The notes: generated from the sequence alone by a model not told the origin. 64,000 nt of DNA from Selaginella moellendorffii (GCF_000143415.4 NW_003314284.1:372001-436000); one strand, 5' to 3'. Positions 17,456 through 20,592 are shown, counted from the first letter of the stretch. Program-made: numbers and translations.

Positions 17456-19106
17456 ACAGGTTAGAAATTTTCAAAAAAAATTCTCATCCACATTTTCTCT
17501 TACTAGATTTCTTCGTGGCAAATAAATGTAGATTTTGTGTTCGTTTGCTTTTTTTCCAGTGCTTGTTTCGTTGCGAAGTACTGGATTTTTGTTTTGAGTC
17601 GTTTCTCTTGAAAAGTTTGTTTATTGTTCTAGACAAACGCCATCTTCTGTGTCTGCTCGAATGATTTCGTCACTTTCTTTGTGCTTTCGTGCATCGCTGG
17701 GATTTTTGTGTCAATCGTTGTCTTTGTTGGATTGATTTGCTTTGCGTCTTTTTGAAGTCTTGGAGCCCTAGACTAATGCGGATTCTCTGTGATATGATCT
17801 TTGGTCTGTCAAGATCTTGGACTGCTTTGCTTTCGTTTCTTCGCTCGCTTTCAAGTACGTCCCTTTTACTTACAGGAAAAGCTAAATCCGTTGCTGTCGA
17901 TTCATTCACCAGGTCTCCAGCGGAAATTTCCTGCGGTGGCCGCGTGCTTGTACCGCCAATAACACAAACGTTTTCTTTTGTGTTCTTGATTGAGTGGAAG
18001 CAGCACCAGCATCAACCAAAACGTTTTGGTTCACCAAACATGGGATTCTTCGTTTCCCTTTCCCTCGTTTGTCCATTTCTTATTCCTGAGGCCCGACTAA
18101 ACATATTCGCGACTGCCCAGCTACGCGAGAAAAGCTCACCATACTGCCGCTGCTAGCTCGCCTTTGTGGTTGTAGACTCCATGTGGTGTTTCGTTTTTGC
18201 AGGCTCCAAGCAGCAATCAATAAGAAAAGGATGAGAAAACTCGATCGATGCATTGAATGGTTGGGCAGAAAAGGACACATGATTGGACAAACAGCCAACC
18301 GACAAAAGCCACCATTTTCAAACCCCACGGAATATACCCCGATTTTACTCAAGGAAAACAATTTCTAAGGCTCTAAGAATTTGAGAATTTAGAAGAATGG
18401 AATATTATTAAAATCTTATAAATTAGTTTGGAAGAATTTTGTCTAGCTATACGCGCTGTTCTTGCTGACACCCAAATATATATATACATTAACGTCCTAG
18501 CTAGCTCTGCTGCATGGCGCTCTGCCTTAGGCTGGAAGATTCACAGCTGCACGAAAAAACAAGCATTTCATTGAGCTTAATAATAATAATGATAATTACA
18601 ATATTAACATCATCAAGTTGACCCATTGAGACGTGCATGGTAAAAAAGAGGAAAAACGAGTATTCTAGAGCCTGCAATAAACTTACATTTCCTTCCTACA
18701 GTTGACGCGAGATGGCTTCACGCACGATCAGCTCAAAGTTAAGTGTTTTGAAGTAAAATTTTGTGTTCTCAGACAGCCAACTAGCGCGTTTACTTTTCAC
18801 CTGGAATCAATCACACAGCCACGCAGCTCTTTCTTAAAGCTCTCGTCATTGTCTTCTCGGCATTAGGGCTTGGCTTTGATCGATTGTGCGGCACTGTGAT
18901 CCATCGAGCTCTCAGCGGTATTCCTCTATTTCATTCTTGCTTTGAGTCTTTTGGATTTGATTCAATGGCTTCTCGCGCAGGTGTTTTCCATCGATTGATG
19001 CCACTAGCGACGACGACGACCAAGCTCTGATTCGACGCTAGCTCTGGATTCCGCTACAGCCATTCTCCTGCTTCCTTGATCCCATCTCTAAAAAAGCCTG
19101 TCAATC

Positions 19107-19112
19107 ATGTAA
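19107..19112 (+). promoter_or_regulatory. AUG-UAA minimal uORF upstream of the NIP start codon (candidate boron sensor)
   Basis: CAATC-ATGTAA-AG, 167 nt before the NIP ATG and downstream of a probable 5'UTR intron (18918-18980). Confidence 0.55.
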
Positions 19113-19279
19113 AGCTCTCCTCTTTCCACTTCTCCCGACCTTTCCAAAATCTTTTCCAAAAAAAAGAAGAAAATCCTGCTCGGATGATGGGGTTCTCTTG
19201 AATCACCACTAGCTCATCGAGCAACAAAAAAGAAAAAACAAAAAACAGGAAAAAAAAGAAATTTTTGTTTTTGCTAGCT

Positions 19280-20592
19280 ATGGCGGACGAAGAACAACAA
19301 GGAAATCTCGTCAATAGCGCTGCGACTGGGACTGGGAATGCGAATGCTCCGGTTACTGCGCAGATTGTCCCGGGCAGCAACAGCAATGGCGTCGGCCCCG
19401 TGTACATAATGGCGCCGGATCGCATTTCCAACGTTTCCACCAGCTTTGGACGCTCGGGGCGGATCAACAAATGCTTCCCGGTCGACAGCTGCGTCATGGA
19501 GGACGGACTCTTCAGCGAATTCCAGGCCGCCATCGCCCCTTCCTCAATCTCGCGCCGCAAAAAGGTACCATTTCTTGCCATCTTTTGCTGCTTGGCGACT
19601 GTTCCATCCATCCTCTCTCGCTGCTACATTGCATAGAAGAGCTGATTTTTCGTTGCATCGTGATTTTTGGAGATCTAGAGATCTGGACAAGGTTTTGTTG
19701 TTCTTGTAGATTGGAGCAGAGTTCATTGGCACCTTCATGCTCATCTTCGCCGGGACAGCCACCGCCATTGTCAACGAGAAGACTTCCGGGAGCATCACCA
19801 CTGTGGGACTGGCCGCCACCTCGGGCCTCGCGGTCATGATCGTCATCCTTGCCACCGGCCATATCTCGGGAGCTCATCTCAATCCCTCGCTCACGCTCTC
19901 CTTCGCAGCACTCCGCCACTTCCCGTGGGTTGAGGTACATTCTTTCTCATTCTTTTTGGTCTCTTTCTCGAGCTTTTGTCGATCGCGCGGGACAGGTTCC
20001 TCTCTACATCGGTGCCCAGGTCGCGGCGTCCATCTGTGCCGCGTTTGCGCTCAAGGGCATCTTTAATCCTTTCATGCATGGCGGCGTCACGATCCCGTCT
20101 GGAAGCTACTGGGAGTCTTTTGTTCTCGAGTTTATCATCTCCTTCAACCTCATGTTCGTCGTCACTGCCGTGGCCACAGACTCACGGGCCGTAAGTAGCA
20201 CTGATCTTTTTCCCCGTTATTATTGCTCGATGTCTTTCTGCTGATTATCAATCCATTAATATCTCAAAGGTGGGGGAGCTTGCGGGGATCGCCGTAGGAG
20301 CAACTGTCATGCTCAACATCCTCATTGCAGGGTAAAAGTCCAGAGTAACTCAAGTGATTCTAGAACGACACTCACTAAATGGTTCCATATCTCACGCAGA
20401 TCCACCTCGGGTGCTTCCATGAATCCGGTTCGTACTCTTGGACCCGCGATTGCTGCCAACAATTACAAAGGCATCTGGCTCTATATTGTCGGTCCAATAT
20501 TTGGTGCTCTAGCTGGAGCCGCTGCTTACACGCTGGTCCGGCTTAAAGGCGAGCCTGAGCCCGGCCGTCCCCGTTTCAGCATGCGGAGGTAG
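19280..20592 (+). CDS. NIP: NOD26-like intrinsic protein, NIP-II group (NIP5;1/NIP6;1-like boric acid channel), 5 exons
   Basis: KCFPV, GAEFIGTFMLIFAGTATA, HISGAHLNPS, SGASMNPVRTLGPA. NPS/NPV loops; ar/R filter A-I-A-R. Confidence 0.92.

Follow-up and report, generated by a model that had tools for sequence, protein, structure and literature searches.

A conserved NIP5;1-type AUG-stop module upstream of the NIP-II channel gene SmNIP3;1 in the lycophyte Selaginella moellendorffii

We analyzed a stretch of 64,000 nucleotides from Selaginella moellendorffii (GCF_000143415.4, NW_003314284.1:372001-436000; here called the window, with positions counted from its first letter) in which the hexamer ATGTAA lies at 19107-19112 on the forward strand, upstream of SmNIP3;1, a gene encoding an NIP-II-like channel. 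This minimal open reading frame (ORF), a start codon followed immediately by a stop codon, is probably the core of a leader element orthologous to the AUG-stop of Arabidopsis NIP5;1, and by analogy with Arabidopsis it would dampen the expression of the channel in a boron-dependent manner. The mechanism and its conservation among species were already known; what we add is a lycophyte member and evidence on the age of the element.

Arabidopsis NIP5;1 has a 5' untranslated region (5'UTR) that is 312 nt long and contains AUGUAA at -122 plus a second, distal copy; this 5'UTR AUG-stop is reportedly the subject of studies by Tanaka et al. from 2011 and 2016. Ribosomes stall on the AUGUAA of this leader, more so at high boron, which hampers re-initiation and stabilizes eRF1 on the stalled ribosome, and the mRNA is cleaved 13-14 nt upstream (PMC11915504, PMC12666852, PMC5698777). 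A conserved region 12-19 nt upstream enhances mRNA decay, not the stall (PMC12666852, PMC11915504). AUGUAA and the sequence around it are described as well conserved between species (PMC9208793), and the rice 5'UTR gives boron-dependent reporter output (PMC12666852). In the literature searched, we found no paper linking the AUG-stop or AUGUAA to Selaginella or lycophytes, and the only co-occurrence was in a review mentioning Selaginella for BOR transporters; the alignments of Tanaka 2016 lie outside that search and may include Selaginella.

The AUG-UAA module and its flank

The initial annotation of the window had placed ATGTAA at 19107-19112, 167 nt before the ATG of a NIP gene, and both the position and the spacing were confirmed in the sequence. 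The hexamer stands in the context CAATCATGTAAA, with an A at -3 and a purine after the stop codon; 167 nt separate its end from the main ATG at 19280, and, counted from A to A, the upstream and the main ATG are 173 nt apart. ATGTAA occurs 40 times in the window, both strands taken together, compared with 29.5 occurrences expected, and because this excess is not significant the hexamer alone says little. The distinguishing mark of the site at 19107 is its flank and not the hexamer count. From -22 to +7 the site is identical to the distal AUG-stop of Thlaspi NIP5;1 at 24 of 29 positions, and the upstream 36 nt agree with this Thlaspi copy at 28 of 36 positions, whereas no more than 15 of 36 positions agree at any of the 39 remaining ATGTAA sites of the window. 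The same 36 nt are identical to those of Diphasiastrum at 24-25 positions. These comparisons uphold the resemblance to NIP5;1 that had been suggested in the initial annotation. The leader had also been described as AT-rich, which does not hold: the presumed leader (18981-19218) is rich in C and T, its G+C content is 46%, and from its composition about 0.06 copies of ATGTAA are expected per 300 nt.

For an independent test we built a profile of primary sequence only, model R1, from 10 modules that come from species other than Selaginella, with the window excluded, and searched window positions 1-19218 and 19266-64000. R1 matched 19064-19113 with 34 bits (E 4.3e-10), which was the only match in 1-19218; in 19266-64000 it returned only a 12.8-bit AT-rich partial match without the hexamer (59187-59218). 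The score of the window site equals that of the weakest training member, the Typha module at -86 (34.3 bits). This profile match and the flank comparison establish homology between the site and the NIP5;1 element.

The conserved module has a length of about 50 nt (19064-19113, forward strand), as defined by model R1 and an alignment of 11 modules (A4), and in the window it reads CTTCCTTGA, 6 nt, CTCTAAAAAAGCCTGTCAATCATGTAAA. The first part is a distal box at 19071-19079 (-36 to -28), which takes the form TTCCTTAG or TTCCTTGA in 8 of the 11 modules. The A-rich upstream box CTCTAAAAAAGCCT occupies 19086-19099 (-21 to -8), contains invariant AAAA and C columns in alignments A4 and A5, and is the counterpart of the conserved region 12-19 nt upstream in Arabidopsis ('-139 UAUA'). 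At positions -19 to -12, Selaginella has CTAAAAAA and Thlaspi TTATAAAA, with 6 of 8 positions identical. Every sequence part of the element is hence in place in the Selaginella module, where the start-stop is accompanied by the A at -3, by a purine following UAA and, at the expected spacing, by the A-rich box. RNAalifold predicted no consensus RNA secondary structure for the module, which fits an element that is read by the ribosome as plain primary sequence.

Distribution and age of the module

We compared the DNA around NIP homologues and tabulated the ATG-stops upstream of the main ATG. An alignment of NIP-II leaders from lycophyte, fern-like and seed-plant sequences, of the kind that the initial annotation had proposed as a check, showed the module to be conserved (A4, 11 modules including the window). 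In genomic sequence it is located 173 nt before the main ATG in the Selaginella window, 216 nt in Diphasiastrum complanatum paralogue a (L001) and 203 nt in paralogue b (L002, L003), while intron-free transcripts from a lycophyte clade of our tree (L012-L014) carry it 176 or 165 nt before the main ATG. It is present 198 nt upstream in a transcript from a separate clade, probably fern (L006), and 162 and 167 nt upstream in two conifer-like transcripts with 85% identity to Cryptomeria NIP5-1 (L009, L010). Thlaspi NIP5;1 has modules at 296 and 115 nt (L004, genomic), and Typha NIP3-1 at 424, 263 and 86 nt (L015, L016; genomic and transcript), so that the distance across the other-species loci is 86-424 nt.

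In alignment A4 these modules have three parts in common: at about -36 to -28 the distal box, ATTCCTTAG or TTCCTTGA; at -21 to -8 the stretch CTTTA(T/G/A)AAAAGCC(T); and lastly AAT(C/T)ATGTAA. Columns without variation among the 11 modules are those of ATGTAA, of the A at -3, of the run AAAA and of one C. Within the distal box of 9 of the 11 modules, an in-frame stop triplet (TGA or TAG) starts exactly 30 nt, or 10 codons, before the AUG; it is a TGA at 19077-19079 in the window and is also present in L001, L002, L004, L006, L010, L012 and L016. The two modules without this triplet have insertions of 1-2 nt. In our reading of ORFs in the Selaginella leader, no ATG-initiated ORF ends at the -30 stop. 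As 30 nt equal one ribosome footprint, we speculate that the stop could position a trailing ribosome.

The module lies inside the intron-free transcript contigs L006, L010, L012-L014 and L016 and is therefore transcribed and retained in mRNA in those species; in all, homologous modules are found well inside spliced transcripts in five other lineages. The module is present in Diphasiastrum, a member of a second lycophyte family, in further transcripts of the lycophyte clade and in leaders of fern-like and conifer-like transcripts, of a monocot and of a crucifer, and this distribution supports an origin in the vascular-plant ancestor or earlier. The element probably dates to early vascular plants, and the alignments provide evidence for an age at least as great as the split of lycophytes from other vascular plants. 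The early vascular-plant age of a NIP5;1-type AUG-stop, suggested when the site was first noticed, is thus well supported by homology, through the R1 match and the occurrence of the module in all of these leaders. A wider proposition appears doubtful to us and is put forward tentatively: the module might be an RNA element of the vascular-plant ancestor that predates the separation of NIP5 from NIP6 and is among the most deeply conserved nucleotide-level elements of plant 5' leaders. It would then include a so far undescribed distal box, and the in-frame stop of this box, exactly 30 nt before the AUG, would perhaps hold a second ribosome or a 40S subunit in a queue behind the ribosome stalled by boron, which would set the site of cleavage.

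Other start-stops and variants were seen in the same leaders. Model R1 had no match in L017, a transcript leader (P0157) from the sister clade of the fern-like group; L017:120-220 contains an apparently degenerate copy, in which GGTGTAAAT comes after a stretch rich in A and GTG replaces ATG, and a separate ATGTAG is present 96 nt before the main ATG. In both Diphasiastrum paralogues a further start-stop, ATGTAG, precedes the main ATG by 119-133 nt (L001:3868, L002:3882, L003:3882), with a flank GAGATCTAC(A/G)TTGCCCAGT that is conserved between the paralogues and gave no R1 match. The three Typha NIP3-1 modules are tandem copies at L015:2077, 2238 and 2415, with the same sites in L016. Leaders contain three copies in Typha, two in Thlaspi and one in lycophytes and in the conifer-like and fern-like sequences, and the number of AUG-stop copies seems to have grown within angiosperms.

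SmNIP3;1 and the surrounding sequence

The gene downstream of the hexamer had been recognized as a NIP with NPS/NPV loops, and our alignment together with the intron lengths identifies it as S. moellendorffii SmNIP3;1 (SELMODRAFT_173700), an NIP-II-like channel. The coding region (19280-20592, forward strand) encodes a 319-residue homologue of the NIP-II type boric acid channels and consists, in our gene model, of five exons at 19280-19564, 19710-19935, 19997-20190, 20270-20331 and 20400-20592. The introns of 145, 61, 79 and 68 nt have exactly the lengths published for SmNIP3;1 (PMC3355642). Three exon pieces matched the Pfam family MIP, and the NPS and NPV motifs are present in the aligned product. 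The aromatic/arginine (ar/R) filter is S-I-A-R in our own alignment, with Ser at H2 as the residue before GL, and the published table lists the same filter along with the NPS/NPV motifs (PMC3355642); the A-I-A-R filter given in the initial annotation was wrong at H2. For PpNIP3;1 of Physcomitrium the filter is AIAR (PMC3355642). A profile search with the exon pieces and a conifer homologue (A3) retrieved the annotated protein SELMODRAFT_173700 (P0270, 276 residues). With our first gene model, the window product was identical to P0270 at 275 of the full 276 residues (99.6%); the sole mismatch was at the exon 1/2 junction, which we then shifted to obtain Ile as in P0270. A look-up of contigs encoding P0270 returned no recorded gene.

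The channel core of SmNIP3;1 is 70-74% identical to seed-plant NIP5-1 and NIP6-1, and the protein has the MIP fold, the NPS/NPV motifs and the small-residue ar/R filter (A/S/G/T, I, A/G, R) of NIP-II, the NIP3 group of Danielson and Johanson. SmNIP3;1 is predicted to transport boric acid and to be regulated by boron. In a quick maximum-likelihood tree, SmNIP3;1 clusters with the proteins of Diphasiastrum and with a single clade of transcripts (Shimodaira-Hasegawa-like approximate likelihood ratio test, 93), and this group falls outside the angiosperm NIP5 and NIP6 clades.

In the public model of SELMODRAFT_173700 the protein begins with Met44 (19409). With the in-frame ATG at 19280 it is longer by 43 residues (19280-19408), beginning with MADEEQ..., which aligns with the MAEEQ... 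start of the Diphasiastrum homologues; we therefore took 19280 as the start codon, and the annotated N-terminus of SELMODRAFT_173700 is probably too short. Whichever of the two starts applies, the leader includes the hexamer. A ThrProGly repeat is required for polar localization of AtNIP5;1 (PMC5698777), and this repeat is degenerate in the N-terminus of SmNIP3;1 (ATGTGNANAP).

Several other features were read from the region; the putative intron, the ORFs and the neighbouring gene are on the forward strand. A putative 63-nt 5'UTR intron (18918-18980), proposed earlier, is recognized solely by its GT...AG pattern and is a weak argument for transcription of the hexamer. The presumed leader contains an upstream ORF of 10 codons (18998-19030, MPLATTTTKL) with a weak start context, which showed no conservation in leader alignment A6, and an upstream ORF of 5 codons, ATGATGGGGTTCTCTTGA (19184-19201), which is aligned with the second AUG-stop (ATGTAG) of Diphasiastrum. 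An A-rich low-complexity stretch (19219-19265) lies directly before the main ATG. The upstream neighbour (15666-17052) looks like a GDSL esterase/lipase gene, from a motif in its ORF, and is split by introns; a further ORF is located at 17141-17455. Downstream of SmNIP3;1 there is a very AT-rich tract (21250-22600, G+C 15-24%) with a long (TA)n microsatellite at about 21420-21497.

Proposed boron-dependent damping, alternative readings and known systems

If the element in Selaginella works as in Arabidopsis, from which its response to boron is argued, scanning ribosomes would initiate at the AUG, whose context is good (A at -3), and the very next codon they meet would be UAA. When cytosolic boric acid is high, the 80S ribosome would remain on AUG-UAA longer, together with eRF1, and this longer stay would reduce re-initiation at the channel ORF 173 nt downstream. 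The stall would also cause the mRNA to be cut a short way upstream, at about -13/-14 within the conserved A-rich box, and less channel would be made when boron is plentiful.

Several observations weigh against this reading. Model R1 had no match in the third Diphasiastrum paralogue (L007), and upstream of Amborella NIP6-1 (L011) it had no match either, with only a 12-bit partial match inside the gene; the presence of the module therefore does not follow automatically from membership of the NIP-II family, and its function may possibly have been lost in a lineage. The A-rich box is UAAAAAA in Selaginella and UAUAAAA in seed plants. The A3 profile search of the protein collection, which returned the 276-residue P0270, did not find the full-length 319-residue product, and the N-terminal exon piece had no match in the collection search. 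The hexamer is presumably part of the mature Selaginella mRNA; the support is indirect and comes chiefly from the transcripts of other species. In 18 runs from one organism (organism A) and 6 studies, the type of which is only guessed to be RNA, we found 0.56-0.68 of the sampled words of 18700-20750. The share expected from exonic 31-mers is about 0.56 if the leader starts just downstream of the hexamer, 0.63 if it reaches 18981 and 0.67 if it reaches about 18800, with a sampling error of about 0.03. The best-covered of these runs, guessed as they are to be RNA, weakly favor a leader that includes the module.

We consider it unlikely, though the strongest of the alternatives, that the module is homologous to the NIP5;1 element and acts in Selaginella only as a constitutive translational damper, like a generic start-stop, or persists as a decaying relic, in either case without a boron-specific role. 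This would agree with the difference at 2 of 8 positions between the A-rich box and its seed-plant form, with the fact that a boron function in lycophytes is argued by analogy, and with the general repression of translation by start-stop elements without a ligand, as described in two sources (PMC13338717, bioRxiv 2021.07.26.453809). However, lineages whose separation lies deep in the history of vascular plants have kept a module of about 50 nt, with Selaginella and both paralogues of Diphasiastrum among its carriers, and this speaks for selection that has continued to act on more than the start-stop by itself. Moreover, the boron effect in Arabidopsis acts via the ribosome and eRF1 on AUG-UAA itself (PMC11915504); since the ribosome and eRF1 are universal, a transcribed AUG-UAA would be expected to respond.

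Much less probable still is that the conserved block acts mainly at the DNA level, as a TATA-like core promoter (TATAAAAG in seed plants), a transcription factor site or a pause site of RNA polymerase II (Pol II), and that the hexamer is incidental. The seed-plant form of the box, CTTTATAAAAGCC, does resemble a TATA box, and Pol II pausing at ATGTAA has been described together with STOP1 motifs upstream of both Arabidopsis ATGTAA sites (PMC11915504). However, the module lies hundreds of bases inside transcript contigs in five lineages, with three copies in one Typha mRNA, and is therefore transcribed rather than serving as a core promoter; CTCTAAAAAAG, the form of the box in Selaginella, does not constitute a TATA box, and the invariant columns are ATGTAA and the A at -3, as expected of a translated start-stop. 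In Arabidopsis, destroying the start or the stop codon while keeping the DNA motif abolishes regulation. Finally, a chance ATGTAA unrelated to NIP5;1, the caveat raised in the initial annotation, is refuted by the R1 searches and the flank comparison: the hexamer alone is common in the window, but it is rarely expected in a leader of this composition, and the site matches an independent profile and exceeds all other window sites in flank identity.

We retain the orthologous NIP5;1-type AUG-stop with boron-dependent damping as the probable reading of the site. Boron essentiality came with the pectin walls of vascular plants, cross-linked through rhamnogalacturonan II (RG-II), and the concentrations at which boron is safe span a narrow range. 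Should lycophytes already have coupled their NIP-II channel to the ribosome-based AUG-stop sensor, homeostatic sensing of boron would have arisen with or before the vascular-plant ancestor, and the sensor element would have been kept almost letter for letter since. The comparison yields a minimal definition that can be aligned, consisting of a distal TTCCTT(A/G)(G/A) box, an A-rich box and AAUC-AUG-UAA, and profile R1 can be used for dating the element in bryophytes and ferns. Natural variants, namely UAAAAAA and UAUAAAA boxes and leaders with one to three copies, are available for mechanistic tests.

The closest characterized system is Arabidopsis NIP5;1, with which Selaginella shares the AUG-UAA minimal ORF in the leader of an NIP-II channel, the A at -3 and, 12-19 nt upstream, a box rich in A and U. 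The spacing to the main AUG falls in the same range (173 nt in Selaginella versus 115 and 296 nt in the crucifer Thlaspi), and the Thlaspi copies at -296 and -115 are close to the Arabidopsis site at -122 and within the 312-nt length of its UTR. Unlike Arabidopsis, Selaginella has one copy instead of two and UAAAAAA instead of UAUAAAA in the box, and the host is a lycophyte gene outside the angiosperm NIP5/NIP6 clades. The monocot orthologues OsNIP3;1 and ZmNIP3;1, represented in our set by Typha NIP3-1 (L015, L016), have the same module in the same gene family, but Typha has three tandem modules (-424, -263 and -86) whereas Selaginella has one module plus two ordinary short upstream ORFs. The Diphasiastrum complanatum NIP-II paralogues (P0271, P0272; L001-L003) resemble Selaginella in having one ATGTAA module, at -216 or -203, with the same TTCCTTGA form of the distal box; they differ in having a second, unrelated-looking AUG-UAG at -133 or -119, the position at which Selaginella has its 5-codon upstream ORF. 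Generic eukaryotic start-stop elements (bioRxiv 2021.07.26.453809; PMC13338717) likewise combine a start codon and an immediate stop in the 5'UTR and repress the downstream ORF without elongation. In contrast to these, the NIP5;1-type element has a conserved upstream flank of about 45 nt that is tied to one gene family, and its characterized members depend on a ligand, boric acid.

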